Shown here in pieces: positions 114-33,908 of a stretch of DNA of 64,000 nucleotides; the stretch's first letter is position 1; every line of letters begins with the position of its first letter. This DNA is from Haliotis cracherodii (taxonomy: Eukaryota): positions 2,604,001-2,668,000 of the forward strand of contig NW_027266283.1 of assembly GCF_022045235.1 (NCBI RefSeq). The letters run 5' to 3'. A program made the translations under genes and the position numbers. The notes beneath the pieces were generated by a model. It had not been told where the DNA came from and ran no database searches. It worked only from the letters and a program-made list of their open reading frames with translations.

Positions 114-1275
114 CTCTTGTGCCACCAGCTCCAGGTTTGCCATCGACTGAAGCAGACATATTCCCGCTGTGGTTATCACCTGTGGCAATATTACCTATAT
201 TACCTTGGTTTGTGATTTGACGACTTCCTGTAATGTAACATGTACATATTATTACATATTGGGGTTGAATATAAATTACTTTTAATACTTGTTAGTATTT
301 TACAACGAATGCATTGACCAAAGTTTCATTTATAAACACATGCTTGTGGTCTTCCCGAAACCGTTCATTAAGCTTTGTATTTTAGCCGATAATTCTTACT
401 GTTGCTTTTATTTATTATAATTCAATATTCAAAGCATGAATGGGAATACATTTTCAGCAGTCGACTAAATTTTGGGGACGACAGAGTCCTGGGACTTCTC
501 TACAGCCGATTGTGACGAAGCAAATGATTTCAATGTACATTGTGACGACATGATAGCAGCTTGTGTAATAGAGCTAAACCTTTTAAGAGCTTGTATTTAG
601 AGGAATTCACTTTGTGTTGACTTAACACGTAGCAATGCGTGTCGTAAATGCCACTTGAGGATAACGAATACTAAAGTATATGTTGTGAGACATTAAATCG
701 TCTGTTGTGGCACCCATCCCTCATCACAAAGCCATGTTGACGGTCACAAAATTCAGGATGACAATGAAGAAAATATTTTTGTTCGGACTGGTATATCTAG
801 TTAGGCCAATGATTATTATTCGAAAATGGCCATCTTCCGTCATATGCTCATGTGTTTAATGGAAAATAATTGTGAAAACAGGATGCCGAAATGATGGTTG
901 ACGGACAAAAGCTCTCCTTAAACACTATGTTTTGTTCCTCATTTTATCAGTTAATAACGATATACCCATAACAATTAATTCCTAATGAATATATGTCATG
1001 TTTTTTTAATCACATTAAACTGCAATATATATGGTATGAACCGGGGTTGTTGAAAAACATATTCAATGGATATTTCAATGAACACAACATAGTGATAAAA
1101 ATACACAATACACTTAAACCTATTTGATTAATTGTGAATCATTTTTGAGTTGACTACCTTGGTTATGGCTGGTAGTGACGCTATTGCCCATCCCGCCGTG
1201 GACAACACCAGCGACATTGGACTTTTCCACCGTGCCGCCTGCAACTCCCGTGACTTTGATATCATACTTTGACAT
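114..1275 (-). CDS. G1: motif-alpha + motif-beta(B) gene, 3'-partial (SAM exon presumably left of the window)
   Basis: Exons 1275-1158 (MSKYDIKVTGVAGGTVEKSNVAGVVHGGMGNSVTTSHNQ, donor G|gtagtc) and 227-114 (GSRQITNQGNIGNIATGDNHSGNMSASVDGKPGAGGTR, cag|...G|gtaag); both introns phase 1. The paralogous copy G3 continues into a SAM exon. Probable non-coding exon with donor at 1523. Confidence 0.8.
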
Positions 1276-1599
1276 TTTGTATTCTGAATAAGCAAGGATA
1301 AACAGACATGATGAGCAATATGACTTCACAAGTACAGAACAGGCGACAACATTTCAACATGGTTCTATCATGGGTTTTTTTATTGTCGAACTTTATTGCA
1401 CTTTTGACAAACTGGATCAGAAATACACATACTGGGCTACGACCAAGTGTCGTAAAGCCATTGGATTAGTTTAAACTTTAAAAAAACCCACAGATCTGTG
1501 TAAGACAAGAAAGTTAACCTACCTTGCTGCTGAAGGGCTCTTCATGCAATGAGCCTCGCTGTCACCTTCCCGTCATTACATATTAACATATTGACATGG

Positions 1600-1650
1600 A
1601 TCTATATATAACCTCTTTCCTGGAAAATACCTTCCGTAAATGACGCAACG
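1600..1650 (-). promoter_or_regulatory. Candidate core promoter of MSKYD-type genes: TATA + GAS/STAT site + CRE/ATF-like site
   Basis: TATATATA at ~1603-1610, TTCCTGGAA (TTCN3GAA) at 1617-1625 and TGACGCAA at 1641-1648, about 80-125 bp upstream of the conserved donor at 1523. Related arrangements at ~17525-17572, ~24830-24880 and ~27135-27185. Confidence 0.4.
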
Positions 1651-2339
1651 TCATGAGTTGTGTCAATAAAAAACAATTCTAACTTCAAGTCTGATGTCAT
1701 CACTGCCTTACACCATGTCTCAAGTGACAAAAAGCATATGATTATCTAGGCTTATATCAGGCAGAAAAGAGCAAGGGTGTGTGAGCCTTGTGTCAACCAA
1801 CTGATTGATATTGAATTACAAACGTTTAGTATTGACTAGGAACGGACTGTACACCTATTGTGTGAACGCTATCGATGTTGTCGGTTCATCTCATGGGTGC
1901 TCATAACAGAAGCCGTCACATAGCTTGAATATCGCTGAGTGCGGTGTTAAACAACAAACAAACCAAATCCTAACAGAAACTTGAAGGAAACTGATTAATG
2001 CCCTTTTGTTGACGATTTCAATTTAGTGGTGAGCATATTTGAAATCAGCATAACGAGAGATTGATAGTGACACTGATATCTTTCTACAAAATCATTTCAG
2101 TGAAAAGCGATTATAAACCTCCAATCGAACGAGAAGTCTTTTCCCTGTTGAATGTGACTCAATCACGAGTTGTACCTGTTTAGAAATATCCCAACTGTCC
2201 CCTAACAGATTCATGATCCCTAACTGGGTTTTTTAAGTGTATATAATCCGAGACAGATAGAGACACTGAAATCTTTCCACGAAATCTATTTGAAGTCACT
2301 GCTGTGTTTTTGCATTTGTTTTTGATAATAAATTACGAA

Positions 2340-3563: not shown

Positions 3564-3771
3564 TGAAAACAAGCCAGACAATCAAGTGATAGATGAATCA
3601 GAAAACTGATCCGTTAAGAAAATGGAATTACGCCTACTTTGTACCAGTAGAGAGATTCTTTTGCTTATAAGTAAAGGAAAAAGTGTAAAGCGTGTATTCG
3701 TTTTGCAACACACTGTGGAATACAATTTAGACCACATTAACTCGAAATATTGTGACCACGGATGAAGAGTG

Positions 3772-3991
3772 AATGAGTGAGTTGGGTTTAACGCCGCTTT
3801 TAACAGTATTCCAGTTATATCGCGGCGTGTCAGCTTAATGTGGGAGGAAAGCCAGAAGTGATGCATGTCTCAGACGTTTACCACCTCGATGAAACCCACG
3901 AGCACGGGTATGGTGCTGACAAACCTAGAAACATAATCGGGGCGAGCCGGGATTCGAACCCACAATCATAGGTTTCTGGCGTGCCCAAGGG
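3772..3991 (-). mobile_element. tRNA-derived SINE family 2, head deleted
   Basis: Matches the full copy at 13844-14125; B-box GGTTCGAATCC and (CACT)n tail are retained. Confidence 0.8.
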
Positions 3992-4512: not shown

Positions 4513-5457
4513 TTATTTTGGAAGAAATTTCTTCAGATTCAGTATTTTCTTCCTTTCAAATGAGTCGTCAATGCCAAAGTCTCCAAGTTCATCCTCGTTG
4601 AGCTGAGACGACAAATCCCCATCAATGCCATGTTTCTTGAATAGTTGAATGTGTTTCTCCAGCTTCTTATTTTGTAGGAGACCAATAATTTCGTCCTCGG
4701 TGATGTCTGAAAGAGCTGTAAATGCAAGCTTTATAGTAAGTATTTTCAATATTAAACGTCACAATTCACATGTTGCGTCGCGTGGAAGCTATCATGTTTG
4801 TTTCAAGGTTACATAGTAAAACAGTATTTCACTTTAGGGTCGGTTAAATTTAATAGTTTATCCGTTATCTATAGACAAATTATGAGAAGTAAACATGATT
4901 CTTTTGTTTAGTTAAAATAAATACGTGTACAGAAGTTCGTTTTGAAAACGTTGGAACCTTTCAGCAAAGTTATGTACATAGCTCATCATATTTCGGCTTC
5001 CTGGTATTGATCCTGGAATGATAGATCAGCCATTTCACATTACAAAGCGGATTAACAGTAGTTTTACCTTTTCCTTTGAAGAATGCAGTGGGTCCTGATC
5101 TTTGCCCTGTGTTTTTTTCTCCTTGATCCACAGTGGCGCGTCGCATGTCCTGCCCACCTACGACGCCGTGGGCATTTTCAATATTATATGTTTGCTGCCT
5201 GTTTTCTGGAATGAAATGTTATGATCAATTTTTGGAGATAGAAAAACATATTTTTTTCTAAATCATCAAATCTAATGATGTTACGTTTAGATTGTTTCAT
5301 TAGATGCATGGCCAAACATATATATATGGGAGGATGTGTTTAAGCGCATTCATAAACTCACCAATAGATTCCATCTGACCTTGATTAATGCCGGCAACCA
5401 CAGAGTTGTCTACGTGAGCATCTCCCGTGACACCCTTCACGTCCATGTTGCTAATAC
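4513..5457 (-). CDS. G2: motif-alpha + motif-beta(A) + SAM(A); first exon not located
   Basis: Exons 5457-5362 (ISNMDVKGVTGDAHVDNSVVAGINQGQMESI), 5205-5068 (ENRQQTYNIENAHGVVGGQDMRRATVDQGEKNTGQRSGPTAFFKGK) and 4715-4513 (ALSDITEDEIIGLLQNKKLEKHIQLFKKHGIDGDLSSQLNEDELGDFGIDDSFERKKILNLKKFLPK*). All GT-AG, phase 1, open. SAM signature F..HGIDG..L..L...EL..FGI...ERKKIL. In-frame ATG at 5446. Confidence 0.8.
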
Positions 5458-6003
5458 CTGATGAATATGTTAAACATTCTCATGAATATATGCACAACTT
5501 AATAAAGGAAAATGTTAATACTGTTGATAATCTGATATAAATATCTCAAACCCCTTTCCATAATCGTACTATATCACTTGACAAAAATCAAATAATTTGA
5601 CATAATTCAACTCGTTCTAATCTCAGATCTCAAAAACTATTTTTAAATTTATTTGAATTTTTCCCCGTTTCAAGACAAGGCAAAAGTTGACCGTATTGAC
5701 ACAGAGTTTGGGCTGATTTCTGCCTATGCCGCTCTTGCGTGTGGCATGATATGATATGTCAATTATTCCAGAAACCTCGATCACACAATAATGTAGATAC
5801 CTTTACGTATATTCTTATGCTATCTGAAGCCTTGATAGTGGGAACACCTAGAGACAATTTAAGTATGGCAGCTGGCTGGGACTTAATAGGTTCATTGTTT
5901 CCTCTTCTTCAATTTGTGCATCCTAACAATGACAACACCATACATTTGAAGGTGCTATACGATGATCCAACACGTCGTATTGCCAGAATATATGACCATT
6001 TAC

Positions 6004-8928: not shown

Positions 8929-9179
8929 GACAAACAAATAAACAAACAAACAAACATATTATATAATATTTGAATAGTACGAAATACCATTTAATAAACC
9001 CTATTGGGTTATATCATGTAGTGTTTGCAAACCTTCCTATTCACTGCGAAGTGTATCCACAGCGAGAGGGCGAACACAGTTATTCATGATAACTTCGAGA
9101 TTATTTCTTAAGCTGCATGTGTATGTATCAGCGTTCCGTGTCACAAATGGAAGTAAACACTTGGCAATGAAAAACCAGT

Positions 9180-10080
9180 TCACTGGATGAGGTCCTCCTT
9201 TAAACGCCGAAGCTTCCTTTGTTCTATCTTGCTGTTAATCCCCAGTTCGTCAAGAAGTTCATCATCTAGGTCCATGAACAATCGCCCGTCAACATTATGT
9301 GTCTCAAAACTCTTAATAGTGTCCTCAGTGCAGTGGCGCTCCCTCAGAAGGTTTATCAGTGTTCCTGGGGTGAGTGCTCTAGGATCTGTTCAAGGTGAAT
9401 CATGTCGATTACAGATATGTCTCTCGATGTCACAAGTATTATCATGAGTACATTATATTCATTAGAAACCATTTACCTAAAGGTTTTAAAACAAACCGTT
9501 TTGACAAACACACCGTTGAATACCCACAATAGTACTCGCATAAGGATATATATCTTATATACCATGGGTTTATAAAAGCAAACGTGTTACAATAGAATTC
9601 GAGAAAAGGTCAACAGTGTAAAATGTCAAAATAATGTATACATGAATTTCGGCTGTAATACAATAGAGATCTGTCCTGTAGACCCGTGAAGGTCCGGGGT
9701 AGAATAGGCCTTCAGCAACCCATGCTTGCCATAAAAGGCGACTATGTTGTCGTTAGAGGCGACTAACGGGATCGGGTAGTCAGGCTCGCTGACTTGGTTG
9801 ATGCATGTCATAGCATCCAAATTTCGTGGATCTATGCTCATGATGTCAATCACTGGATTGTCTGGTCCAGACTCGATTATTTACAGACCGCCGTCATATA
9901 GCTGGAATATTGCTGAGTGCGGCGTTAAACAACAAACAATTAAGATCCGTCCTTGACAAGCCTTACCTCTTGTGTCACCAGCTCCAGGTTGGACACCGAC
10001 TGAAGCAGCCATATTCCCGCTGTGGTTATCACCTGTGGCAATATTACCTATATTACCTTGGTTTGTGATTTGACGACTTC
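9180..10080 (-). pseudogene. G3: motif-beta(B) + SAM(B); first coding exon and promoter deleted
   Basis: Exons 10080-9967 (GSRQITNQGNIGNIATGDNHSGNMAASVGVQPGAGDTR) and 9385-9180 (DPRALTPGTLINLLRERHCTEDTIKSFETHNVDGRLFMDLDDELLDELGINSKIEQRKLRRLKEDLIQ*); the SAM exon is absent from the ORF track. Both are open and phase 1. At ~11030 the sequence jumps from the equivalent of ~1149 to ~2395, removing the MSKYD exon. Confidence 0.75.
9680..9940 (+). mobile_element. SINE family 1 (long copy); the equivalent copy in the first duplicate ends at 1-90
   Basis: gacccgtgaaggtccggggtagaata...gctggaatattgctgagtgcggcgttaaacaacaaac. Confidence 0.85.
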
Positions 10081-11101: not shown

Positions 11102-12552
11102 GTCAAAGTCAAAGATATTTATTGCATGTAAGGCCTCCGGCCCATATACAAGAGAGTTACAAACAAGTAGTGTACATATTTGGATATATGCTCATGTTTA
11201 ACAATTTGTTTCTTCTGAGGGAAATTGCATTTTTAACATATATAGCCAGTTTTAATATGACAGCATCATCTTTTGAAGAAAGAAGAGAAATAAAAGCAGG
11301 TACAGGATAATTTGACAGATAACTTTCTGGTATAAACTTTCCTCTTAGGTCACAATAATAAGGACAGACAAAAGTAACATGAATTTCATTTTCTATAGCT
11401 GAATGACATAATGGGCCCAGCCTCTTTGACTTTTCAGTGGACATTTTATTCCTTCATTTATCATGAGATCTAACAATACGAGCCTAAATTGAATAAATGG
11501 ACGTCGAAGGGTTGTTGATGTTAATGTTGAATAAGACTCTTAAACGTTCTGTACAAGTCATACCTTGAACTATTTTCTAGAGTAGAATGCCAATCCTGAT
11601 AAAACATTTATAGATTGTTCACGAAATTGTTTCAAAAAGAGTTTAACATCACCAATTGTTTGGTTTTACCATACAAATCCATAGCCATAAGAAAACAAAA
11701 GGATTTTGATATGTGATGCCCATGTTACTTTGCCCATGTCGTCGAAAAGTACAAGCATATTATAAGCAAGTTTGGGGATTCGGCGTTCATGCATTCCAAA
11801 AATATTAAATGAGTATTTCAAGCATCTAATTTGGGAGTTGATATATATCGGGTCTCTGCCACATTCGCCATAGACCATACAATAGCGTGTTGATAAGAAA
11901 GTTTTACAGTCTAAAAGATGTAGCTTTTCAAGACAATCGTATCGCTGAAATCCCCATACTTCTGATCCATAAAACAGGATTGGTTGAATTTGGGCATCAA
12001 ATAATTTAAAAATGTAAAAGTGTACAATCTCCTACTTTCTGCGAGACAGACATTACTCTTCACTGAGGCCTTCTTTGCACGTGATGTTAAGAGCGAGACA
12101 CTTTTCTTGAAGTTCATTGTATGGGTAAACATTACGCCAAGATATGTATGGTGGCTCAGAAGATTAACACATTTACCATTCAGTGACACCTCACCCCCTC
12201 TTCTGAAAATGACAATGTTTGTTTTATCATGGTTAATTGATAGTTTCCACTCTTTGGAATAAAATTCTAAAATATTAAATTGTTTTTGTAATCCAACAAC
12301 AGAATCTGACAATAAATTTCATCATCGGCAAAAAAGAGGCATCGAAATATCTATAACATTTGGGAACAATTGAAGACCATGTTCACCCTTAGCCATAATT
12401 TCATAATATAATTCACTAATATCAAAATGAGAACAATATCGGGCTCAAGATACAGCCTTGTCGTAAGCCAACAGGACAAAGAAAATCGGTTACATCGGCA
12501 CCACATCGTACACATGATTTGATATTTGAATACATAGCTTTTAATATAGAGT
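11102..12552 (-). mobile_element. 5'-truncated, decayed non-LTR retrotransposon (RT + C-terminal Cys/His motif; clade uncertain, RTE-X/CR1-group-like)
   Basis: RT motifs CPVGLRQGCILSPILFS, LFADD.....DSVVGLQKQ and YLGVMF; C-terminal LCHSAIENEIHVTFVCPYY; 3' AATAAA plus (TTTGAC)n tail. acgtcaaa duplicated at 11094-11101 and 12553-12560; empty site at ~2454-2461. Confidence 0.9.
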
Positions 12553-13843
12553 ACGTCAAACTGCTGAACTGCTTTGTTAAAACGTCACATAGAATGAACG
12601 TTTTGACACACACTAACTTAGATTCCCAATTGCGTTCGATTGGCTGTCGATATTCTGATGGTTATTTGACACTGACATTGTTGAGATAACACAGGACGAA
12701 AGAGTGATTTTAGGTGAGAGCAAGTCATAAATATAATAGCCAGGTTAATTTAGAATCGAATATGTATAACCCGAAGGGTAACATATATTGATACACGTAT
12801 TTCTCGATTGGGAAATAGTGATTTGTACCAATGAAAATCCACACAGAAAAAACATATGTCTTTCATGGTTTTACCTTTTTGGTGTGCATACCATTATGGT
12901 GCACACCAATATGATGATGTAGATATAGGTTCAGAAATTGTCGTTTAAGTTGTTGAAATGGTTTGTAAACTTTGGCAAAATGTTTTCACCTGCAGGTTCT
13001 GATATAACGCTATGAGACGGTTTAAAACACTATATTTATATGTCCCCTTCACAATGATCTGATTCAGTCTTTCCCGAGAAGAACTTGCATTCATCCATTG
13101 TAAAACCCTCACTATGACCGTCCAGAGTATAAATAAATCAGTCACATTGTCCCACACTGAGTAGTTGAAGGCTGTTGAATAGTGTAGGTGTATTGAAAGT
13201 TTCTCTAACTCTTGTTGAGTGAAAGGAGATATTATTAAAGTTATTCACAACAAATCTTCAACATTGGACACGAATTGATATGATTCTAGATCGACTGCTC
13301 GTGGCAGAGATTTCTTATGAATATGGAAAGGGTTTTGTCGCTTTTATTCACTTTGATTAAATCTTATTTAACAAGTAGTATATGAACTTCGAAAGTAACC
13401 AGGAGGTGCATAGAATATGTAAATGTACAATGTCAATGCAAAGGAGATTAACCAGTGTTGAATATCCCCCGAAGCAGATTCCACTTGGCGTAAGGGCAAT
13501 ATAGCTGTGACAGTTTTATGAATGGACTGGTGAAAATCAGTGATGACACCAGGTATTCTCAAATGGGTGTAAGTATGTCCAGATGCATTCACACCAGTTG
13601 CATCAACAAGCAAGTATTCATTACCTGACGCCGCACAGCCATGCGACGGCAGCCTGAAAACAAGCAATCAAGTGATAGATGAATCAGAAAACTGATCCAT
13701 TAAGAAAATGAAATTACGCCTACTTTGTACCCGTCTTTTGCTTATAAGTAAAGGAAAAAGTGTAAAGCATGTATTCGTTTTGCAACACACTGTGGAATAC
13801 AATTTAGACCACATTAACTCGAAATATTGTGACCACGGATGAA

Positions 13844-15083: not shown

Positions 15084-17180
15084 TTATTTGGGAAGAAATT
15101 TCTTCAGATTCAGTATTTTCTTCCTTTCAAACGAGTCGTCAATGCCAAAGGCTTTAAGTTCATCCTCGTTGAGCTGAGACAATAAATCACCATCAATGAC
15201 ATGTGTCTGGAATAGTGGAATGTGTTTCTCTAGCTTCTTCTCCTGTAGGAGACCATTAATGTCCTCCTCAGAGATGTCCGAAAGAGCTGGAATGCAAACC
15301 TAGTAGTAAATATATTTCATAATAAAAGCCCAAACCCACACGTTATGTCACGTTGAAGCTCTCTGATGGTTTTCATGTTACACAATGAAACAGTATCTCA
15401 CTGTGGTGCCGTTTAAAAAAATATTGTTTATCAGTTTTCTTATAAACGATTTATGAGAAGCGTGTTTCTTTAAGATCAGTGATTCTGTATTAATAGCATT
15501 CCGTCTCAGGAGCATCTATGAATACATTTTGAAGGATACTGATTTGTAGTGCAGAAGTAAACATGATTCTTCTTATAAGTTAAATAAATACGGGTGCAGA
15601 ATTTCGTTTTTGAAACGTTGGAGCTTTTCCGCAAAGATCATAGCTTATTATATTTCGGCTATCAATGAAGTATTGATCCTGGAATGATAGATCAGCTGTT
15701 CAAAGTTTTATGTAACACAGATGATAAACAGTAATTTACTTTTTCCTTCGAAGTATCCAATGGGTCCTGATCTTTGCCCTGTGATTCCTCCTTGATCCAC
15801 AGATGCGCCTCGCATGTCCTGCCCACCTACGACGCCTTGGGCATTTCCAATGTGGTACGTTTGCTGCCTGTTTTCTGGAATGAAATGTTAATGATGATTA
15901 GATCAATGTGTAGAGATAGGAAACCAATTCAGTTAATTTTTAAATTCGATATCAAATTAGATTATGTTTCTTGATTTTATTTGCTACATGTGATGGATGC
16001 AAGGCCAACCATATTAGCCTCATCATGTGGGAGGATTGGTTCCTGCCAATCGCTATCCTCATTTGGTCTTTATTATTTGTTTTGTCACTGCAACTAACAC
16101 ATTGACCAATTGCTGATTCATAGTTTTAAAGAGACCTCTTATCAATATGGAAAGGGTTTATAAGGGTTTGTATATAACTTATAATTATTCAATATTCAAA
16201 ATATGTTGCAATACCTTTTTAGCCGAAAACACGAGAACAATGGACTAATTAAAATTTAGGGACAACAAAGAGCTAGACTCTGGCTCCCTTCTTTCATCTA
16301 CTGTCACATGATAAGTGCATAGCAATGAGAGCTGCTATGACATAATAATGACGCTTGCTATAGAACCAAATCTTTCAAGGCGTTCTTAATTGTCTTAAAC
16401 CAGAAACCTATGATTGTGGGTTCGAATCCCGGTTCGCCCCGATTATGTTTCTAGGTTTGTCAGCACCATACCCGTGACCGTGGGTTTCACCGAACAAATC
16501 TTTCAAGGCGTTCTTAATTGTCTTAAAAGGTGCTACACACTGTCAGTGCAACTTGAGTATAATGATGTTTTAAAATTATGTTTGAGCACACGCGAATGTC
16601 CAGGGCCATATTTCTTTTAAAGACAACTATAGGTGTTTCATTTATTCAGATCGAAAAGAAGCTCAAGACATAGGACCACTAACATAGTATTTTTCCCAAA
16701 CAAACAAAGTGATCCCGTTTATTTTATGTATTGTAGAAAGGAGATAAGCGTACAATGTTCGTAATGCTGGCAATGTTAGCCATGTTATGCTGTATATCCT
16801 TTTCCAAGTTCAATTTAGCCCTGTTAAAACAGTATTCTTGTCTTCTATTTAAATCCAATCAATAACAAAATATTCTTGCCAAATTATGTATATATGTCTT
16901 TTCTTTTACCACATTAATGTATGACATTTCTTATGAATCTGTGTTTTTTTTAAGTATTTGAATCTTTAAAAGGAACATTTCAAAATATGACATCGAAATG
17001 AACAGCAATGGGATATAACCACAGGACACTTAAGTCTATTTTACAAATCTCTTTCAGTTGACTACCTTGGTTGTGGTTGGTAGTGGAGGTATTACCCATC
17101 CCGCCGTGGACGAAACCAGCCATATTTGACGTTTCTGTCGTGCCTTCACCTCCCTTCATTGTGATATCATACTTTGACAT
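15084..17180 (-). CDS. G4: chimeric gene, MSKYD motif-alpha + motif-beta(A) + SAM(A), 150 aa
   Basis: Exons 17180-17066 (MSKYDITMKGGEGTTETSNMAGFVHGGMGNTSTTNHNQ), 15874-15740 (ENRQQTYHIGNAQGVVGGQDMRGASVDQGGITGQRSGPIGYFEGK) and 15286-15084 (TLSDISEEDINGLLQEKKLEKHIPLFQTHVIDGDLLSQLNEDELKAFGIDDSFERKKILNLKKFLPK*); 453 nt open. Non-coding exon donor at 17450. Confidence 0.78.
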
Positions 17181-18727: not shown

Positions 18728-20172
18728 TTATTGAGGAAGATATTTCTTCAGATTCAGTATTTTCTTCCTTTCAAACGAGTCGTCAATCCCAAAGTTTGCT
18801 TTGAGTTCATCCTCGTTGAGCTGAGACAATAAATCCCCATCAATGCCATGTTTCTCGAACAGTGGAATGTGTTTTTCTAGCTTCTTCTCCCGTAAGAGAC
18901 CAACAATGTCCTCCTCAGAGATGTCCGAACGAGCTGGAATGCAAACGGAGTCGTAAATATATTTCATAATAAAAGCCAAAACCCAAAGGTTACGTCACGT
19001 TGAAGCCTTACTGATGGTTTCAATGTCACACAGTGTTATCAGTTATTTTTAAACAATTTATGATAAGCATATTTCCTTAAGATCAGTGATTCTGTATTAA
19101 TACTACTCCGTCTCAGGAGCATCTATGAATACTTTTTGAAGGACACTTATTTGTAGTGTAGAAAAGATTAATTTTCGCTTGTACATAATTTCGTTTTAGA
19201 AACGTTGGAGCCTTTCAGCAAAGATATGTACATAGCTAATCATATTTCGGTTCCCAATGAAGTATTGATCCCGGAATGAAATATCAGCGGTTCAAAGATT
19301 CATATAACACAGCAGATTAACAGAAATGTTATAATTACCTTTGCCTTTGAAGTATCCAATGGGTCCTGATTTTTGCCCTGTGATTCCTCCTTGATCCACA
19401 GATGCGCCTCGCATGTCCTGCCCACCTACGACGCCGTGTGCATTTCCAATATTGTATGTTTGCTGCCTGTTTTCTGGAATGAATTATTACTGATATCGAT
19501 GATGATTTCAATGTGTGGAGATAAAAAACCGATTGAGTCAATTGTCTAATTCAAATGGTATTACGTTTCTTGATTTTATTGATACTTGGATGAAAGACCA
19601 ACCATATTAACATGGTAATGTATAAGGATCTGTTCCAGCGAATCCATAAACTCACCAATAGATCCCATTTGGCCGTTATTAATGCCGTTGACGACAGAAT
19701 TTTCAACCTCAGCATTTCCCTTGGCACCCGTCACCTCCATGCTGCTTACATCTGGTGAATATATGAAATATTACTTATGCATACATGATTAACCTTCTAT
19801 AAGATTATAATAATAGTAATACTTAAAAATGAAAAAAAGTTCTTTTCCATAATCATATCATGAGCTGACACAATCAAATGCTTCGGGGGCGGTCGGGTAG
19901 CCTAGTGGTTAAAGCGTTCGCTCGTCACGCCGAAGACCCAGCTACGAACTGGCTATGTAGGACAGCCAGACTTTAGCATAACAACTTGTCCATATACAGT
20001 GTATGTGTTATTCAATTATTGTTTGTTATTTTAAGCGACTACATCAAACGATAAATAAACAATTCATACCTTTCTGTGGTGGAAGTTTTCCGTTACTGTT
20101 TTGAATCCCAGTAACGCTTGAGTTCTTTATTTTTGCGTTTCCGTCTGCCCCTGTCACGGTAATTGTGGCCAT
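18728..20172 (-). CDS. G5: two motif-alpha exons + motif-beta(A) + SAM(A), complete, 179 aa
   Basis: Exons 20172-20070 (MATITVTGADGNAKIKNSSVTGIQNSNGKLPPQK), 19751-19656 (DVSSMEVTGAKGNAEVENSVVNGINNGQMGSI), 19473-19339 (ENRQQTYNIGNAHGVVGGQDMRGASVDQGGITGQKSGPIGYFKGK) and 18933-18728 (ARSDISEEDIVGLLREKKLEKHIPLFEKHGIDGDLLSQLNEDELKANFGIDDSFERKKILNLKKYLPQ*). 540 nt, canonical phase-1 introns, in-frame TAA two codons before the ATG. Confidence 0.88.
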
Positions 20173-22085: not shown

Positions 22086-23423
22086 TCAACTAGATTTCTT
22101 GGAACGATTTTCGAGAATTGTGTTTATCTTCATTTTATCTAGGGGTGACGTGACACCGAGCGCTTCCAAAACGCCCTCTTCTAAAAGTTTCACAAAGTAT
22201 TTGCCGTCAATGCCATTTTCCTCAAATGTTTTTCTCGTGGGTCCAGGAAAACGCTCTCTGGTCATCAGATCCTGAACATCTTCAACCGTCTTCAGCTCCA
22301 AGGCTGGACCTGGAACCGTGGTAAACAGTACATGTTACCATATGATTCGACATGTGTGTTAAATCATATATACGTTAAACAACATCCTGGTTTAGAGATA
22401 TACCCCTTATGCCGGATAACAATACATATATGTACATGAACTAACCGACAAAAGACAAGTGAAAACCATCGATGGTGGTTAAAACATGAAAAACTACTCA
22501 TATTCAAGAGATATGAGATTGGTTCCATGCACAAACGAACATACTTGTATATCGTGAAGAGCCGGGGTAGAATAGCTCTTCGGCAACCCATGCTTGCAGC
22601 GACTATGCTTGTCGTAAAAGGCGACTAACGGGATCGGGTGGTCAGGCTCGCTCAGGGAACGCCCATGTCATTTCTCGGAAAATATTTCCAACAACAACTC
22701 CAAAATTAGATTTTGGACAGGCTACCACTCGCATTGACTGTCAACACTTTTGAAATTTGATCAGTAGCCAACAAATGTACATGCAGAATTTTTGTTGTTG
22801 GTGACAATGATCTAATTTAAGTGCGAAACGATTTTCAGAATGTAAAAATTGGGTCAAGTGTTAGATAACAAAGCCAGGTGACGTTTTTTTTCAAATCAAA
22901 AGGTCTAATGATGATGCACGTGGTACGTCACTCACGTACACATATTCAGTCATAGTTTCACGTTTGACATGTCCTTGCATGTGTTTGTGACGGGAAGGCT
23001 CATCTTTTTGCGATCACCTAAAATTCATTCGGGGACATGACTGGTGAGTGAGTGAGTGAGTGGCTGGGTTGTGTGGGTGGATTGAGTGAGTGAGTGAGTC
23101 ATGTTACGGTTGCCTGCAGACAATACTGTCCCAGAAATCATCGTCACATCGCCTCACCGGGATACAATTGCTCTTCAGCAACCCATGTTTGCCTTTGGGA
23201 GCAACTACTCTTGGAAGAAGTGACTAACGGGGTCGGGTGGTCAGGCTTGCCCAATTGCGTGGATCTATGAACATGATATCGATCACTGGATTGTTTGGAC
23301 AAGCCTTACCTCTTGTGCCACCAGCTTCAGGTTGGACACCGCATGAAGCAACCATGTTCCCGCTGTGGTTATCACCTGTGGCAATATTACCTATATTACC
23401 TTGGTTTGTAATTTGTCGATTTC
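22086..23423 (-). pseudogene. G6: patchwork of motif-beta(B) exon + SAM(D) exon, own first coding exon lost (may be used by G7)
   Basis: Exons 23423-23310 (GNRQITNQGNIGNIATGDNHSGNMVASCGVQPEAGGTR) and 22309-22086 (GPALELKTVEDVQDLMTRERFPGPTRKTFEENGIDGKYFVKLLEEGVLEALGVTSPLDKMKINTILENRSKKSS*), both intact. Only the donor remnant of the MSKYD exon survives at ~24296-24300. Confidence 0.65.
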
Positions 23424-24300
23424 CTGGAATGTAAAATGTACATACTATTACATATTGGGATTGAATATAAATTACTGTCAATACTTGTAAGTATTTTACA
23501 ACGAATGAGCTCTGTAGTTCTTAGCAGATATTTCTTCTTGTTGCTTTTGTTTATTATAATTTTATATTCAATGCATGAAAGGGAATACATTTTCGGCAGA
23601 AAACACATTAGAAGTCGACTAAGTTTTGGGGAAAACAGAGAGCTGGGACTTCTCTACAGCGGATTGCGACGAAGCAAATGTTTTCAATGTGCATTGTGAC
23701 TACATTTCTGTGGCTTGTGCAATAGAGCTTAACCTTTCAAGGCCTGCTAAATTGTATTTAGACGTACTCACTTTGCGTTAACAAGTAGCAATGCGTGTCG
23801 TAAATGCGACTTCAGGATAACAAATACTAAAGTACATGTTGTGAGACATTAAATCGTCTGTTCTTGTACTCCAACTCTCATCACAAGGCCATGTTGACGG
23901 TCACAAAAGTATAGGATGAAAATGAAGAAAATATTTTTGTACATACTGGTATACATCTAGTTAGGACAATGATTATTATTCGATAATGACCATCTTCCGT
24001 CATATGATTATGTGTTTAATGGAAAATAATTGTGAATACCGGGTGCCAAAATTATGGTTGAAGGACTATTATGTTTTGTTCCTCGTTAAATCAGTTAATA
24101 ATTATATACCAATAACGATTTATTCATAAATAATGAATAAATATCATGGGTTTTTTTCTTCACATTAAAGTGTAATATATAGTCGGTGTTATTGAAAACA
24201 GTATTTAATGGACATTTCAATTAACACAACATTGTAATAAAAATGCAGAATACACTAAACCTATTTTATTAGTCGTGAATATTTTTTACGTTGACTACCT

Positions 24301-24678
24301 ACGAAACTTTGCATGTCTATCAGACTCATGCTGAACTGGTGCCTTTTGATATTTAGCACTTTGAGTATTTTATTGTTTATGTTTCCATGACAACAGGTTG
24401 GACTTAGGTTCTATTATAGGGTGGGTTCACTTATGGAGTATAACAAATAAACTGTTAAATATTTCCTTGCCAAACATTGCATGTCTATATATAAAGCACA
24501 TACTGAACTGGTGCCATTTGATATTAAGGAGTTTTAGAAATGTATATTTTAGAATTTCCTTTACAGCTATTTTGACATGGGCTTAGAGAAATGTTGGGTC
24601 ATTTACCTGGTTTGGGACCATAACGTGTTAAAATAGGCGGGGGATATAGATGACTTCGTCGACTATACGCTTGTTTCT
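24301..24678. mobile_element. Inserted repeat (possibly a non-autonomous Helitron/Helentron-type element) replacing the MSKYD exon
   Basis: Absent from G1 at the same position; has an internal imperfect tandem repeat (gcatgtctat...ctgaactggtgcc.tttgatatt) and a ggcggggga...cttgtt end. Confidence 0.45.
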
Positions 24679-25352
24679 TATAATATCAAAGCCGTTGGAT
24701 TAGTTTTAAACTTAAAAAACACAGATCTGTGTATGACAAGAACGTTAACCTACCTTGCTTCTGAAGGGCTCTTCATGCAATGAGCCTCGCTATCACCTAC
24801 CCGGTATTACATATTAACATATTGACATGGATCTATTTATAACAACTTTCCTGGAGAATTCCTTCCGTAAATGACCAACGAGATGAAACGCAACGCAAAT
24901 GAGATGATTGTTGTTGTTTTCTTCTTCTCAGATAAAAGCCCAAACCCACACGTTATGTCAAGTTGAAGCTCTCTGATGGTTTTCATGTTACACAATGAAA
25001 CAGTATGTCACTGTGGCGCTGGTTAAAAAATATTGTTTATCAGTTTTCTTATAAACGATTTAGGAGAAGCGTGTTTCTTTAAGATCTGTGTTTCTGTATT
25101 AATAGCATTCCGTCTCAGGAGCATCTATGAATACATTTTGAAGGATACGTATTTATATTGCAGAAGTAAAGATTCATTTTCATATTCATAGTTAAAATAA
25201 ATACGGGTGCAGAATTTCGTTTTGGAAAGGTTTGAGCTTTTCCGCAAAGATCATAGCTTATCATATTTCGGCTATCAATGAAGTATTGATCCCAGAATGA
25301 TAGATCAGCTGTTCAAAGTTTCATGTAACACAGATGATTAACAGTAATTTAC

Positions 25353-26792
25353 CTTTTCCTTCGAAGTATGCAATGGGTCCTGATCTTGGCCCTGTGATTC
25401 CTCCTTGATTCACAGATGCGCCCCGCATGTCCTGCCCACCTACGACGCCTTGGGCATTTTCAATATTGTATGTTTGCTGCCTGTTTTCTGGAATAAAATG
25501 TTAATGATGATTAGATCAATTTGTGGAGATAGGAAACCAATTCAGTTAATTGTTAAATTCGATATCAAATTAGATTATGTTTCTTGATTTTATTTGCTAC
25601 ATGTGATGGATGCAAGGCCAACCATATTAGCCTCGTCATGTGGGAGGATGGGTTCCAGCGAATCGCTATCCTCATTTAATCTTTATTATTTGTTTGGTCA
25701 CTGCAACTAACACATTGACCAATTGCTGATTCATAGTTTTAAAGAGACCTCTTATCAATATGGAAAGGGTTTATAAGGGTTTGTATATAATTTATAATTA
25801 TTCAATATTCAGAATATGTTGCAATACCTTTTTAGCCGAAAACACGAGAACAATGGACTAATTAAGATTTAGGGACAACAAAGAGCTAGACTCTGGCTCC
25901 CTTCTTTCAACTACTGTCACGTAATAAGTGCAAAGCAATGAGAGCTGCTATGACATAATAATGACGCTTGCTATAGAACCAAATCTTTCAAGGCGTTCTT
26001 AATTGTCTTAAACCAGAAACCTATGATTTGTGGGTTCGAATCCCGGTTCGCCCGGATTATGTTTCTAGGTTTGTCAGCACCATACCCGTGACCGTGGGTT
26101 TCACCGAACAAATCTTTCAAGGCGTTCTTAATTGTCTTAAAAGGTGCTACACACTGTCAGTGCAACTTGAGTATAATGATGTTTTAAAATTATGTTTGAG
26201 CACACGCAAATGTCCAGGGCCATATTTCTTTTAAAGACAACTATGGGTGTTTCATTTATTCAGATCGAAAAGAAGCTCAAGACATAGGACCCCTAACATA
26301 GTATTTTCCCAAACAAACAAAGTGATCCCGTTTATTTTATGTATTGTAGAAAGGAGATAAGCGTACAGTGTTCGTAATGCTGGCAATGTTACCCATGTTA
26401 TGCTGTATATCCTTTTCCAAGTTCAATTTAGCCCTGTTAAAACAGTATTCTTGTCTTCTATTTAAATCCAATAAATAACGAAATATTCTTGCCGAATTAT
26501 GTATATACGTCTTTTCTTTTACCACATTAATGTATGACATTTCTTATGAATCTGTGTTTTTTTAATTATTTGAATCTTTAAAAGGAACATTTCAAAATAT
26601 GACATCGAAATGAACAGCAATGGGATATAACCACAGGACACTTAAGTCTATTTTACAAATCTCTTTCAGTTGACTACCTTGGTTGTGGTTGGTAGTGGAG
26701 GTATTACCCATCCCGCCGTGGACGATACCAGCCATATTAGACGTTTCTGTTGTGCCTTCACCTCCCTTCATTGTGATATCATACTTTGACAT
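25353..26792 (-). CDS. G7: copy of G4 whose SAM(A) exon is deleted
   Basis: Exons 26792-26678 (MSKYDITMKGGEGTTETSNMAGIVHGGMGNTSTTNHNQ) and 25487-25353 (ENRQQTYNIENAQGVVGGQDMRGASVNQGGITGPRSGPIAYFEGK), intact. At ~24931 the intron is fused directly to 3'-flank sequence (equivalent of ~14850 joined to ~15322). Confidence 0.65.
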
Positions 26793-28338: not shown

Positions 28339-29780
28339 TTATTGAGGAAGATATTTCTTCAGATTCAGTATTTTCTTCCTTTCAAACGAGTCGTCAATCC
28401 CAAAGTTTGCTTTGAGTTCATCCTCGTTGAGCTGAGACAATAAATCCCCATCAATGCCATGTTTCTCGAACAGTGGAATGTGTTTTTCTAGCTTCTTCTC
28501 CCGTAAGAGACCAACAATGTCCTCCTCAGAGATGTCCGAACGAGCTGGAATGCAAACGGAGTCGTAAATATATTTCATAATAAAAGCCAAAACCCAAAGG
28601 TTACGTCACGTTGAAGCCTTACTGATGGTTTCAATGTTACACAGTGTTATCAGTTATTTTTAAACAATTTATGATAAGCATATTTCCTTAAGATCAGTGA
28701 TTCTGTATTAATACTACTCCGTCTCAGGAGCATCTATGAATACTTTTTGAAGGACACTTATTTGTAGTGTAGAAAAGATTAATTTTCGCTTGTACATAAT
28801 TTCGTTTTAGAAACGTTGGAGCCTTTCAGCAAAGATATGTACATAGCTAATCATATTTCGGTTCCCAATGAAGTATTGATCCCGGAATGAAATATCAGCG
28901 GTTCAAAGATTCATATAACACAGCAGATTAACAGAAATGTTATAATTACCTTTGCCTTTGAAGTATCCAATGGGTCCTGATTTTTGCCCTGTGATTCCTC
29001 CTTGATCCACAGATGCGCCTCGCATGTCCTGCCCACCTACGACGCCTTGTGCATTTCCAATATTGTATGTGTGCTGCCTGTTTTCTGGAATGAATTATTA
29101 CTGATATCGATGATGATTTCAATGTGTGGAGATAAAAAACCGATTGAGTCAATTGTCTAATTCAAATGGTATTACGTTTCTTGATTTTATTGATACTTGG
29201 ATGAAAGACCAACCATATTAACATGGTAATGTATAAGGATCTGTTCCAGCGAATCCATAAACTCACCAATAGATCCCATTTGGCCGTTATTAATGCCGTT
29301 GACGACAGAATTTTCAACCTCAGCATTACCCTTGGCACCCGTCACCTCCATGCTGCTTACATCTGGTGAATATATGAAATATTACTTATGCATACATGAT
29401 TAACCTTCTATAAGATTATAATAATAGTAATACTTAAAAATGAAAAAAAGTCCTTTTCCATAATCATATCATGAGCTGACACAATCAAATGCTTCGGGGG
29501 CGGTCGGGTAGCCTAGTGGTTAAAGCGTTCGCTCGTCACGCCGAAGACCCAGCTACGAACTGGCTATGTAGGAGAGCCAGACTTTAGCATAACAACTTGT
29601 CCATATACAGTGTATGTGTTATTCAATTGTTTGTTATTTTAAGCGACTACATCAAACGATAAATAAACAATTCATACCTTTCTGTGGTGGCAGTTTTCCG
29701 TTACTGTTTTGAATCCCAGTAACGCTTGAGTTCTTTATTTTTGCGTTTCCGTCTGCCCCTGTCACGGTAATTGTGGCCAT
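28339..29780 (-). CDS. G8: near-identical copy of G5, 179 aa
   Basis: Exons 29780-29678, 29362-29267, 29084-28950 and 28544-28339. Two synonymous changes in the alpha exons, Q>H and H>Q in the beta exon, SAM protein identical. Confidence 0.88.
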
Positions 29781-31706
29781 TGTTTAACCTGTAATATAAC
29801 AGATCCTTCAGATTATGACCACAGTGGTGTACCATTTACAGACAGTTCTCAAACTTCGTTTATCCCAAAGTCGACTTGTCCTGTAAGAAGAGACCCGTGA
29901 AGATCCGGGGTACAATAGGTCTTCAGCAACCCATGCTTGCCGTAAAAGGCGACTATGCTTGTCGTAGGAGGCGACTAACGGGATCGGGTGGACTCGCTGA
30001 CTTAGTTGATGCATGTCATCGATCCCAATTGTGTGGATCGATGCTCATGATACCCATCACTGGATTGTCTGGTCGAGACTCGATTATTTACAGACCGCCG
30101 TCATATAACTGGAATATTGCTGAGTGCGGCGTAAAACAACCAGCCAACCAACTGTAAGAAGGTGAAACTTCGTGTCCCCACACCAGACCTGATAACAGTG
30201 GTGCTTGACATACAGGCTACAGATGCCGTGTATCGTAAGGCCCCAGGATTTGTGTCATTGGACGTTTTGAAGTGGTTGTGCTTGGTTGTGTTGAAGTTAC
30301 ATGTTCAATAAAAGCAGAATGTCCATAAACGACTTTTTAATCCGTAAAATATTTGTTAAATATACCAAACTGCATACTCTGATGACATTACAATTGAACA
30401 TTAACAATTAGTGTTTTTGTGATTTGGATAATTCCAACATTTCAACTACATCGGTTATAATATGTTCTTACACTGTACTGAGTTTCAAATCCTTAATAAA
30501 AGCCTCCTCATTTAATTACTTTGAATAATTGCTCATGAAATAAAGTATTACCTTTGTGTGGACGAATATCATGAACGTCTGGTTTCTTTGTAGGTTTAGC
30601 GATGTGACAGTTTTCTATAGTGTTGACTTTATTGATTTCTTATGACATGGACTTATTTTTATTTCCATGACGTGGATCTACTTTTCTCAGGGAACGCCCA
30701 TGTCATTTCTCGTAAAATATTTCCAACACCAACTCCAAAATTAGATTTTCCATTTCGGACAGGTTACCACTCGCATTGACTATCAACGCTTTTGAAATTT
30801 GATCAGTTGCCAACAAATGTACATGCAGAAAAAAATCTGTTGGTGACAAGGATCTAATTTTAGTGTCCTGTGCGAAACGATTTTCAGAATGTAAAAATTG
30901 GGTCAAGTGTTTGACTGGTGAGTGAGTGAGTGGGTGGGTTGTGTCGGTCGATTGAGAGAGTGAGTGAGTGATGTTACGGTTGCCTGAAGACAATAGTGTC
31001 CCGGAAATCATGACAAACGACCCATGCTAACGGTGACCCGCATGCACCAAGCCCCGTCACATCGTCTGACCGGGTTATAATTGCTCTTTAGCAAGCCATG
31101 CTTGTCTTAGGGAGCACCTATTCTTGCAAGAAGCGACTAACGGGATCGGGTTGTCATGTTCGCTGACTTGGTTGATGCAGGTCATTGCTCAGATCGATGT
31201 TCATGATGTCAATCAATGGATTGTCTGGTCCACCTGATTATTTGCAGACCGTCGTCATATAGCTGTGATATTTCTGAGTGCGGCATTAAGCAACAAACAA
31301 ATAAATAATGGGCAAACCCTTCACAGTAACACACTTGAAATAAAATAAAGCCTTAAGCGCGGACCTACCTGGAGGCCTGTTGTAACAACAAACAAACAAA
31401 CAAACAAACAAACACAGAGCCGGATCAATCTATCCCAAATTAATTCCGCAATCACGCTTGAAAACACAACAGTGATGCATACATTGAAGTAAATAGATAA
31501 TATTTATTTGATAAAATATGAGTCGATGAAAATCAGGTAACGAATATGTACTTTGATTAAAACAATTAATCGTTTGATGTCATGAATGACAGTTGATAAC
31601 ACTAAAGCGGCAACAATTGTCATCGTCCATGGTCCATGTCATGTCGTGAGATGGTCAAGGATGAAGCATAGTGGACCCGAATGATAGGCGAACATCAATG
31701 GGGCAG

Positions 31707-33908
31707 TCAACTAGATTTCTTGGAACGATTTTCGAGAATTGTTTTTATCTTCATTTTAGCAAGGGGTGACGTGACACCGAGCTCTTCCAAAACGCCCTCT
31801 TCTAAAAGTTTCACAAAGTATTTGCCGTCAATGCCATTTTCCTCAAATGTTTTTCTCGTGGGTCCAGGAAAACGCTCTCTGGTCATCAGATCCTGAACAT
31901 CTTCAACCGTCATCAGCTCCAAGGCTGGACCTGGAACCGTGGTAAACTGTACATATTACCATATGATTCGGCATGTGTGTTAAATCATATATACGTTAAA
32001 CAACATTCTGGTTTAGAGATATACCCCTTCATATATGGGTGGACACAATTTTATGGATAACAGTTTCTTTGATACTGTAAAAAGCGACGTTTCGGTTCAG
32101 ATCATTATACCGTTGACAAGCAAGACTGAATACGGGACATGTACAGAATATATATAGTAGGTGTACTGTGTACTATATATACTACTATATATATGTACCA
32201 TGTCCCCCATTCAGTCTTGCTTTACAACGGTATAAGGATCTATACTGAAACGTCGCTTTTTACAGTATTGAAGTTGTTATCTATAACATTGTGTCTACCT
32301 CATCATCCGTCAACTTCTAAGTAATGCCTATCAAACAATTAATACATATATGTACATAAACACACCGACAAAAGACACGTGAAAACCATAGATGTTGGTT
32401 AATACATGAAGAACTACTCATATTCAAGAGATATGAGATTGGTTCCGTGCACAAACCAACAAACTGGTATACTCAGTCTGTATAAACCTACTCTCATGAA
32501 CGTCACATGTGACGCCATAGATCCGTGACTCGAGCTGCACTTTTTGTCTCGTGCAGGATTAGCGTGTTAAGTTTGGAAATCATGTGCACCATATTGTGAT
32601 GAGAATAAAGACACGGTGGTAACTTGTTTGATAGGCATTACAACGGTGGTAACATTTGACAGGTTGTTACTTTTGTCATTAAACGGTACACATTGGAAAC
32701 ATCTCTTCTCAAGGTACATACTTCTCTATATCTTTCTTGGTTCGCGTTTCTTTTGACGGTGAGTATATATGCAATGTCTGTCTATATATGCAATGGTGGC
32801 CCAGTCGTATAAGGCGCCGCGATTCGCTGTGCAGAGTTGCGTCCCTTGAGCACGCCAGAAAGCTATGATTGTGGTTCGAATCCCGGTTCATCCCGATTAT
32901 TTTTCTAGCTTTGTCAGCACCATACCCGTGCTCATGGGTTTCATCGAAGTGGTTAACGTCATATACCTGCATTCCTTCGAGCTTTCCTCCAACATAAAGC
33001 TGACACGCCGTGATATAACTGGAATACTGTTCAAAGCGGCGTTAAACTTTGTAGAACGGACGCCTGAATTCTAAAGGTGGGCCGTGTATGGTATTAAATT
33101 AATATGCGTCAACATTTGACTTGTTTGAAGTAGTATTCTGTTAAACTCAAAAGGATTATGTTGTGGATCGTGTAGATGTCTCCCCATTCATACACGACAG
33201 TTAAATTCTATAAAACGTTATAAATGGCGAGTAATAAATAAAATACTAAACTTGCTCCCGTTTAATACCAATTTTATGAAACTCGCTTCCGCTCTTCAAA
33301 TACAAGAACTATTCACTCGTTTCATAAAACTGGTATTACACGGGAGCTCGTTTAGTATTCTATATGTTCTCTAAACCTAGATAAATATGTGAGCCCTACT
33401 TTGAGATGTAGTTTGTGACGCTGGTTGTTGTGATGGGCTGCTGCTGCTGCTGCCAATGTTGACCTTGTCTCCTGTGACCTCGTTGACGGTCGTCACTCCA
33501 GTGCTGCCGCTCACGTTGTTGTGGTATGTCTTTTCCACTGAACAAATTTACACACATTTACACATATTGCAAGTACTCCCCCCAAGCAACAGTGTAACAT
33601 TAGCCTATACTGAAATCAATTCAATCGTTCAAATAATGTTTCTTTCCATATTTACTCAGATGAGTGCGGCATATACATTGTTTCCATTGGTGACCTAGCC
33701 TCTGTATTGTTCTATATCATATTTAATACGAAAGTGTCAATCTTTAACAAAAAATGCATTTACGAAAATAGTTACCTTTGTGTTGCGGCCCGTGATAGAT
33801 GTTGCCCATCCCCCCTTCAACCACCGCAGCCACATTGCTGTGAGTAGCCTGCCCTCCAGACATCCCCGTTAATTTTATAGATCCCGGTAGTCTCTCCATC
33901 TTCTTCAT
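31707..33908 (-). CDS. G9: motif-alpha + motif-beta(D) + SAM(D), complete, 164 aa
   Basis: Exons 33908-33776 (MKKMERLPGSIKLTGMSGGQATHSNVAAVVEGGMGNIYHGPQHK), 33537-33400 (VEKTYHNNVSGSTGVTTVNEVTGDKVNIGSSSSSPSQQPASQTTSQ) and 31930-31707 (SPALELMTVEDVQDLMTRERFPGPTRKTFEENGIDGKYFVKLLEEGVLEELGVTSPLAKMKIKTILENRSKKSS*). 495 nt, phase-1 GT-AG introns. Confidence 0.85.
32030..32340. mobile_element. Foldback insertion with Penelope-like terminal-repeat arms
   Basis: Inverted arms ~32040-32140 and ~32199-32296 containing cttg(a)caacggtataa...gaaacgtcg; absent from the paralogous intron at ~22408. Confidence 0.6.
32794..33047 (+). mobile_element. SINE family 2
   Basis: tggtggcccagtcgtataaggcgccgc...aaagcggcgttaaac. 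Confidence 0.85.
33243..33360. repeat. Hairpin/MITE-like inverted repeat
   Basis: atactaaacttgctcccgtttaataccaattttatgaaac ... gtttcataaaactggtattacacgggagctcgtttagtat. Confidence 0.7.

Follow-up and report, generated by a model that had tools for sequence, protein, structure and literature searches.

Tandem Family of Haliotis Genes Joining Glycine- and Asparagine-Rich N-Terminal Modules, Candidate Beta-Solenoid Rungs, to a SAM Domain

This work describes a tandem cluster of small multi-exon genes on the minus strand of a 64,000-nucleotide stretch of DNA from the black abalone, Haliotis cracherodii (Vetigastropoda; C20:2,604,001-2,668,000, on a contig of 5,819,777 bp; GC content of ∼0.38). 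The whole of this stretch is referred to here as the window, and positions are given in window coordinates unless a contig is named. A first interpretation made without database searches (the sequence-only reading) had assigned the encoded proteins the architecture [alpha]1-2-[beta]-SAM, with short alpha and beta motifs preceding a SAM domain, and had proposed that they form an undescribed invertebrate amyloid-signaling system. This architecture is supported by the alpha peptides, the beta exons, the SAM exons identified with Pfam, and the RefSeq gene models. Family members contain one to three alpha modules, one to four beta modules, and a single SAM exon at the C terminus. The genes are real and undescribed; the amyloid-signaling role is still only a hypothesis.

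All six alpha peptides quoted in the sequence-only reading were located on the minus strand of the window. In a search with a local profile hidden Markov model (HMM) built from these peptides, nine copies in the window scored E values of 1e-9 to 1e-21, and no further window site scored better than E 0.7. A tblastn search with family proteins retrieved two more SAM exons (15286-15084 and 9386-9189) and two beta exons (15874-15740 and ∼25487-25353); another SAM exon lies at 28544-28339. Gene models were read by eye, after which length, frame, and stops were verified by script. The alpha sites and gene models are as follows (ORF, open reading frame).

1204-1260; 17112-17165 (near-copy at 26724-26777); ORF 33744-33974, minus strand: alpha peptide sites

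19681-19740/29292-29351; 20104-20163/29712-29771; open frame 5303-5479, minus strand: alpha peptide sites, continued

114..1275, minus strand: G1 (P0019, 145 amino acids), with exon 1 (alpha) at 1275-1158 and exon 2 (beta2) at 227-114

4513..5446, minus strand: G2 (P0016, 141 amino acids), with an alpha2'-type exon at 5446-5362, beta1 at 5205-5068, and SAM-A at 4715-4513

9189..10078, minus strand: G3 remnant, with beta2 at ∼10078-9974 and a SAM-C-type exon at ∼9386-9189

15084..17180, minus strand: G4 (P0002 / XP_071111898.1, 167 amino acids), with alpha at 17180-17066, beta1 at 15874-15740, and SAM-A at 15286-15084

18728..20172, minus strand: G5, with alpha1' at 20172-20070, alpha2' at 19751-19656, beta1 at 19473-19339, and SAM-A at 18933-18728

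22086..26792, minus strand: G6/G7 region, with alpha at 26792-26678, beta1 at ∼25487-25353, beta2 at ∼23442-23344, and SAM-B at 22301-22086

28339..29780, minus strand: G8 (P0014, 179 amino acids), with alpha1' at 29780-29678, alpha2' at 29362-29267, beta1 at 29084-28950, and SAM-A at 28544-28339

31707..33908, minus strand: G9 (164 amino acids), with alpha at 33908-33776, beta3 at 33537-33400, and SAM-B at 31930-31707

The manual splicing on which the sequence-only reading relied was borne out by RefSeq proteins that reproduce the models of G8/G5 (P0014), G4 (P0002), G2 (P0016), and G1 (P0019), each of which bears the name "uncharacterized protein," and by the G8 and G9 junctions described below. 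G1, which had been taken for a partial gene, is complete: its SAM-C exon lies 400-660 bp to the left of the window (C20:2603340-2603609), and its alpha exon has a GT donor, read by eye. For the G3 remnant, an alpha exon was not found; retroelement-type ORFs at 11157-12613 (minus strand), reverse transcriptase-like by eye, occupy its expected place. In the G6/G7 region, between G5 and G8, the SAM-A exon expected from duplication and G9-type alpha and beta3 exons are absent. The exons of this region are all phase-1 cassettes, and a hypothetical four-exon fusion transcript would keep frame.

Two large direct repeats underlie part of the cluster. The first, of 9.6 kb, spans ∼15.5-22.3 kb and 25.2-31.9 kb (to 31950) and is 93-100% identical between copies; the second, of about 10 kb and 96-97% identical, joins 0.6-4 kb and 10.4-14 kb. 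Because both members of each pair sit in the 9.6-kb repeat, G5 is a copy of G8 (2 residues of beta1 differ) and parts of G4 and G7 are likewise near-copies, and there are therefore fewer independent genes than the exon count suggests. The large repeats may represent either real tandem duplication or an assembly or haplotype artifact. The ratio of nonsynonymous to synonymous substitution rates (dN/dS) between the 9.6-kb copies is ∼0.4, with too few changes to be informative, and the differences between duplicate alpha exons fall mostly at synonymous sites.

For G8 and G9, exon junctions were compared with RNA-like contigs from H. cracherodii (X15 and X16) and from two relatives (X17 and X18). 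The contigs skip the G8 introns 28544|28950 and 29084|29267, both of which read CT..AC, i.e., GT..AG on the minus strand. For G9, contigs of three species join exons 33989-33776, 33537-33398/33400, and 31928/31936-31522, giving the junctions 33537|33776 and 31928-31936|33398-33400. The joint between exons 1 and 2 of G8 in the contigs (29351|29674) is noncanonical and carries paralogue-type variants; it probably derives from another gene copy. The genes are transcribed and spliced. All coding introns that were checked are GT-AG and phase 1 (three of three in G8), and since all modules are symmetric phase-1 exons, any combination of modules keeps the reading frame.

The alpha module comprises ∼30-44 amino acids, begins 2-6 residues after the initiator Met, and follows the pattern x-I-x-V-T-G-x-x-G-x-x-V-x-N-S-x-V-x-G-[IV]-x-x-G-x-M-G-N. 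The beta module (∼36-45 amino acids) occurs in three subtypes, of which beta1 and beta2 are mutually alignable ([SN]-R-Q-x-T-x-N-x-G-N-[IA]-x-x-[IV]-x-[TG]-G-[DQ]-[ND] ... A-S-V), with beta3 of G9 as the third type. Homology between alpha and beta was not detected with hhalign (probability of 9.7%) and is therefore not claimed. The number of modules per protein ranges from 2 to 6 across paralogues, orthologues, and isoforms, and protein length from 141 to 301 amino acids. P0017 from H. rufescens has three alpha modules followed by beta1 and beta2, while the H. asinina isoforms P0003/10/11/12 (236-280 amino acids) differ in content and contain up to four identical beta2 repeats. P0020, also from H. 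asinina (301 amino acids), has six modules whose order matches that of two adjacent genes in the genome, one G9-like and one G8-like. P0020 and the four isoforms suggest that read-through or cassette-exon splicing diversifies the modules, unless these are gene-model artifacts.

Over 1061 N-terminal residues, the composition is 18.6% G, 10.1% N, 8.8% T, 8.5% S, and 8.3% V, with only 0.7% L and 1.7% P. Dyrka and colleagues reported this bias for amyloid signaling motifs and beta-helices, and such motifs are described as ∼25 amino acids in length, enriched in Q/N/G/V/I, depleted in P/L, with beta-propensity, and terminal in position (bioRxiv 10.1101/2020.01.06.895854); the abalone modules share this composition, and the alpha motif is terminal. 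Identity between species is 80-89% for beta1, 72-92% for SAM, and 60-87% for alpha. The modules are thus about as conserved as the SAM domain and appear similarly constrained, which argues against their being a mere linker. Within the alpha1'/alpha2' pair, the positions charged in both repeats are opposite in sign in three of three cases in both H. cracherodii (D/K, K/E, and K/E) and H. rufescens (E/K, D/K, and K/E). In HET-s, opposite charges at equivalent repeat positions form inter-rung salt bridges.

The absence of a signal peptide or transmembrane segment, claimed in the sequence-only reading, is supported by hydropathy: no 19-residue window in the family proteins exceeds a Kyte-Doolittle value of 0.9, and the proteins therefore have no transmembrane segment or hydrophobic signal-peptide core and are soluble. 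A secreted or shell-matrix protein was considered and rejected, given the missing signal peptide and the cytosolic SAM domain.

The C-terminal domain was assigned by sequence and by fold. Pfam models SAM_1 and SAM_2 (PF00536 and PF07647) match the exon ORFs 4513-4749, 18728-18979, and 22086-22301. Three subtypes were distinguished: SAM-A exons score 31-41 bits versus Pfam cutoffs of 20.5-23; the SAM-B exon at 22086-22301 scores 22.1 bits on SAM_2, and that at 31707-31922 scores 20.4 and 19.4 bits, just below both gathering cutoffs; SAM-C has no precomputed Pfam match. In AlphaFold2 (AF2) models, the C-terminal domain reaches a predicted local distance difference test (pLDDT) score of 77-92. 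In these models, SAM-C has the five-helix SAM fold, superposing on the CNK2/HYP SAM domain with a VIA-align Z of 12.2 (root mean square deviation [rmsd] of 1.7 Å over 74 residues) and on SARM1 with a Z of 10.6. The solved sequences closest to SAM-A are SARM1 SAM1 (E 1.5e-5), Caenorhabditis elegans TIR-1, and ANKS6, and SAM-B has no sequence match in the PDB. The proximity to SARM1, TIR-1, and ANKS6 offers a sequence-derived lead for a partner and is not evidence of one. The closest SAM domain outside the family in the genome lies in a 217-amino-acid open exon at C1:23,338,243-23,338,893 (plus strand), with 44% identity to SAM-A over 48 amino acids; acidic, tyrosine-rich motifs (YDYIEP and IYTPIDEDEVY) precede the domain. 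One possibility is that this open exon is part of an adaptor gene akin to the one that donated the SAM exon.

Single exons were searched separately, and the full-length proteins used in searches and fold predictions were database proteins. An exhaustive search of 1.84 billion representative proteins with the alpha profile gave 8 matches. The named ones come from H. cracherodii, H. rufescens, and H. asinina, and the rest are fragments of 39-109 amino acids from tiny contigs; short alpha-bearing fragments include P0004, P0006, and P0008. When full-length members or the beta2 array served as queries in word-based searches, Haliotis was again the only genus returned. The scope "invertebrate" is too broad, because every named match is Haliotis.

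Within the 1.18-Gb genome, a six-frame search was run with the alpha profile plus the beta1, beta2, beta3, and alpha'' exons. The alpha, beta1, beta2, beta3, and SAM subtypes are confined to C20:2.596-2.638 Mb, apart from divergent or orphan copies. A second, divergent cluster of the family occupies C15 12.03-12.28 Mb (12,031,000-12,284,200), where minus-strand genes of the type alpha''-beta2''-SAM-C'' consist of a first exon beginning MAQQGTHN[IT]GMSGG..., a beta2-like exon, and a SAM-C-like exon; some of these copies are broken by stops or frameshifts. An isolated gene fragment at C14:15,943,700-15,944,720 contains a beta3-like exon (…THNNVMDSTNVNLTNDVTGQNVIIGSTGAG…) and a SAM-C-like exon spread over two frames. 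Orphan alpha sites on C10 and at C15:10.9 Mb lie amid transposon ORFs, and no domain exon adjoins them. In this exon-wise search of the whole genome, neither alpha nor beta exons were found next to exons for NLR, TIR, death-fold, or kinase domains; the sensitivity of the search is limited, in that the divergent alpha'' of the C15 genes escaped the alpha profile. The flanks of the C20 cluster (∼20 kb to the left and 30 kb to the right), whose ORFs were inspected by eye, contain no NLR, TIR, or death-fold ORF; they hold satellites, transposon ORFs, and one unrelated gene. The expectation that the motif would be shared with a receptor or effector was therefore not confirmed, as the genome search returned SAM-family genes or orphan fragments only. 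In all, these genes constitute a Haliotis-restricted, tandemly duplicated, novel family of small cytosolic proteins. The earlier statement that no such family had been described holds: there is no Pfam or PDB match for the alpha or beta modules, and literature searches found no paper describing the family.

For the fold of the N-terminal modules, sequence comparison gave no match. No alpha or beta exon matched any Pfam family at E<=10 (RHIM, HET-s_218-289, and Curlin_rpt included), and alpha and beta profiles gave no PDB sequence match at E<=10 (chains of 2RNM and 2KJ3 included). In the best AF2 model of P0003, the four beta2 repeats form a regular four-strand unit per 36 residues at a pLDDT of 56-70. 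The best non-SAM Foldseek matches to this model are FapC (E 3e-3, probability 0.25) and the CsgA fibril (E 0.12), and residues 26-179 align with the CsgA fibril at a VIA-align Z of 7.4 and an rmsd of 8.7 Å. For P0014, the ESM Atlas model (pLDDT 0.57) most resembles beta-helical adhesin heads, with template modeling (TM) scores of 0.60-0.65; a search of the ESM Atlas by features gave no usable match. On the basis of composition, charge-complementary pseudo-repeats, SAM-like conservation, and the AF2 and ESM models, we assign the N-terminal modules, with low to moderate confidence, to the beta-solenoid class of fold. The beta-arch modules of the sequence-only reading are thus retained, at the confidence of these models.

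The family can be set against known systems that share some of its features. HET-s and the HRAM motifs (PF11558) are likewise short G/N/V-rich modules at a protein terminus attached to a globular domain, with two or three non-identical pseudo-repeats, opposite charges, and beta-solenoid rungs, which are predicted in the abalone family. However, the abalone family has no sequence match to them, its modules are 30-45 amino acids long rather than 21 as in HET-s, its globular partner is SAM in place of HeLo, the abalone motif was found on no NLR, and the family is confined to one animal genus. When alpha1'/alpha2' is taken as a HET-s-like two-rung solenoid, the charges are complementary, but AF2 gives only low-confidence hairpins. 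CsgA and FapC (curli and Fap) resemble the family in their tandem, imperfect G/N/Q/S-rich repeats and are the nearest non-SAM structures to the beta2-array model; in contrast to these, the abalone proteins have no Curlin_rpt (PF07012) match or signal peptide and are fused to SAM, and the structural matches are weak. RHIM and cRHIM (RIPK1/3, ZBP1, and TRIF; Drosophila PGRP-LC/LE and Imd) are also short metazoan cytosolic motifs, possibly in tandem, for which a cross-beta structure is proposed, whereas the abalone motifs have no I/V-Q-I/V-G core and no PF12721 match and occur with other domain partners. The strings closest to a RHIM core, as judged by eye, are GIQNS (alpha1') and AQGVV (beta1). 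Pfam, at E<=10, gave no support for placing the modules among RHIM, HET-s, or other amyloid motifs.

Among SAM polymers and adaptors (the SARM1/TIR-1 SAM1-2 ring, ANKS3/ANKS6, Polyhomeotic, and tankyrase), the likeness is a bona fide SAM domain, recognized by both Pfam and fold; unlike SARM1/TIR-1 and the ANKS proteins, the abalone proteins have no TIR, ARM, or ankyrin parts and comprise only 141-301 amino acids. Mycobacterial PPE-MPTR proteins share short Asn/Gly-rich repeats, but precomputed Pfam matches and scans show no PPE N-terminal domain in the abalone proteins. Two automatic RefSeq names given to H. asinina members, "PPE62-like" and "ANKS6-like," find no support: precomputed Pfam matches of these proteins are SAM_1/SAM_2 or nothing, with no PPE or ankyrin regions, and in all likelihood the names go back to composition or to the SAM domain alone. 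The family is a true member of the SAM superfamily and matches no HET-s/HRAM, curli, or RHIM profile; in its proposed mode of action it comes nearest to the HET-s/HRAM or BASS pseudo-repeat motifs and the curli/Fap repeats.

We tentatively propose, as a possible reading that still falls short of probable, that each module is a rung in a short beta-solenoid with uncapped ends and that the SAM domain provides a second assembly surface, making the proteins enzyme-less, self-associating scaffolds. Each G/N/V/T-rich module would form one rung of a solenoid of the HET-s/curli kind, and consecutive, non-identical rungs would stack inside the protein, helped by charges of opposite sign where the rungs correspond. 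Ends without caps would permit further stacking, both from molecule to molecule and from one paralogue to another, with the SAM domain as a second self-association or docking surface. Such doubly self-associating scaffolds, lacking an enzymatic part, might then seed or lengthen assemblies of higher order. Rapid turnover of the genes and their restriction to one lineage fit a role in defense or stress signaling and do not show it.

Several results weigh against this proposal. In the Pfam and PDB searches, the modules resembled no amyloid or beta-helix family by sequence, and alpha and beta are themselves not detectably homologous (9.7% with hhalign). In AF2 models, residues 1-179 of P0017 fall below a pLDDT of 50, with a hairpin in each alpha module; the alpha module of P0003 is also below 50, and a mean of 59.8 was attained by a single model out of the five for P0003. 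Matches at the fold level are weak, and the VIA Z of 7.4 is within the range that the tool calls common. A four-copy complex prediction for P0014 residues 1-110 scored 0.06, "no answer," and is evidence neither way. The charge complementarity rests on three positions, and the two species in which it appears are not independent.

The main rival in our ranking, which we consider unlikely but the most serious of the alternatives, is that the N terminus is a disordered, prion-like low-complexity tail that supports SAM-aided reversible condensates or serves as a spacer, with no ordered cross-beta structure. The low pLDDT of P0017 residues 1-179 and of the P0014 model, the missing Pfam and PDB matches, and the G/N/S/Q-rich composition are all what such a tail would give. 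However, position-specific motifs, beyond composition, are kept across paralogues and three species, beta1 is conserved like the folded SAM domain, beta-branched residues alternate with polar ones, and the P0003 repeats are modeled as regular rungs.

Two further readings seem to us distinctly unlikely. One elaborates the solenoid into a cytosolic, combinatorial functional amyloid, in which duplication of genes and exons, together with alternative or read-through splicing, would mix symmetric phase-1 rung exons into arrays of 2-6 rungs on a SAM domain, which would link the cross-beta polymer to SAM-based, possibly SARM-type, assemblies. The other holds that the modules form a small, soluble, monomeric beta-helix that binds a ligand or partner and that SAM alone oligomerizes. 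It agrees with the soluble beta-helical adhesin heads nearest to the ESM model, with the ice-binding protein and SufB/D beta-helices that also appear in the Foldseek list, and with the rung number, which often varies in such folds. Yet the modules have no capping elements, the alpha motif begins 2-5 residues past the initiator Met, and two or three rungs alone would probably not be stable as a monomer.

We regard as improbable the reading closest to the original proposal, namely, that the modules are amyloid signaling motifs templated by an upstream receptor (NLR/STAND, TIR, or PGRP-like) and that the proteins act as adaptors, amplifiers, or decoys in immunity or cell death. The position of the motif at the extreme N terminus and the pseudo-repeats and compositional bias, as in HRAM and BASS motifs (bioRxiv 10.1101/2020.01.06.895854), speak for it, as do the RHIM-like motifs known in invertebrates (PMC4262963), the rapid turnover of the tandem family, and a SAM domain nearest to SARM1/TIR-1. 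Against this, the exon-wise genome search, of limited sensitivity, found the motifs only next to family SAM exons or as orphan fragments among transposons, they have no G-phi-Q-phi-G or I/V-Q-I/V-G core and no RHIM or HET-s Pfam match, and inspection by eye of ∼20 kb to the left and 30 kb to the right of the cluster showed no NLR, TIR, or death-fold ORF. Of the proposed amyloid-signaling system, then, modules on a SAM domain that are solenoid-like with low to moderate confidence are retained, while a receptor or effector sharing the motif and a match to a known motif were not found. Equally improbable is a reading in which the genes are young and specific to the lineage, have been selected for little or nothing, and amount to a coding minisatellite that expands in the company of a SAM exon. 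Restriction to one genus, several remnants and broken copies, and a recent-copy dN/dS of ∼0.4 from very few changes speak for it. Against it stand the same module types in H. cracherodii, H. rufescens, and H. asinina, the intact reading frames, the splicing shared by RNA-like contigs of three species, the mostly synonymous differences between duplicate alpha exons, and the maintenance of two separate clusters.

Known metazoan signaling amyloids comprise RHIM-type, Orb2/CPEB-type, and a few others, and beta-solenoid pseudo-repeat motifs of the HET-s/BASS/curli kind have been described from fungi and bacteria. If the combinatorial functional amyloid considered above as distinctly unlikely is correct, it would be the first HET-s/curli-like beta-solenoid signaling scaffold in an animal. 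A family that pairs such repeats with SAM would provide a simple, testable adaptor that unites two assembly principles, solenoid repeats and SAM (a classic polymerization domain), and a natural case of rung-by-rung modular evolution via symmetric exons. For at least a dozen abalone genes now called "uncharacterized," the proposal supplies a hypothesis to work from, and the genus is of concern to both conservation and aquaculture.

Some further features of the locus were recorded. The window contains five N runs (masked sequence or gaps), among them 37958-38568, 46922-47074, and 60435-60579. Long, coding-looking minisatellites with several frames open lie on both sides of the cluster, at 41046-42520 of the window and in the left flank, with units HYRDYHALQGLSCTTG... 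and SDTLHTDALP.... Repeats at 29497-29550, 29892-30140, 32795-33047, and 31155-31350 are covered at enormous depth by each of the four RNA-like runs. One of these interspersed repeats ends in a tRNA-like tail (loose-end consensus GGGTTCGATTCCCGACATGGGTAC) and therefore probably represents a tRNA-derived short interspersed nuclear element family common to several Haliotis species.

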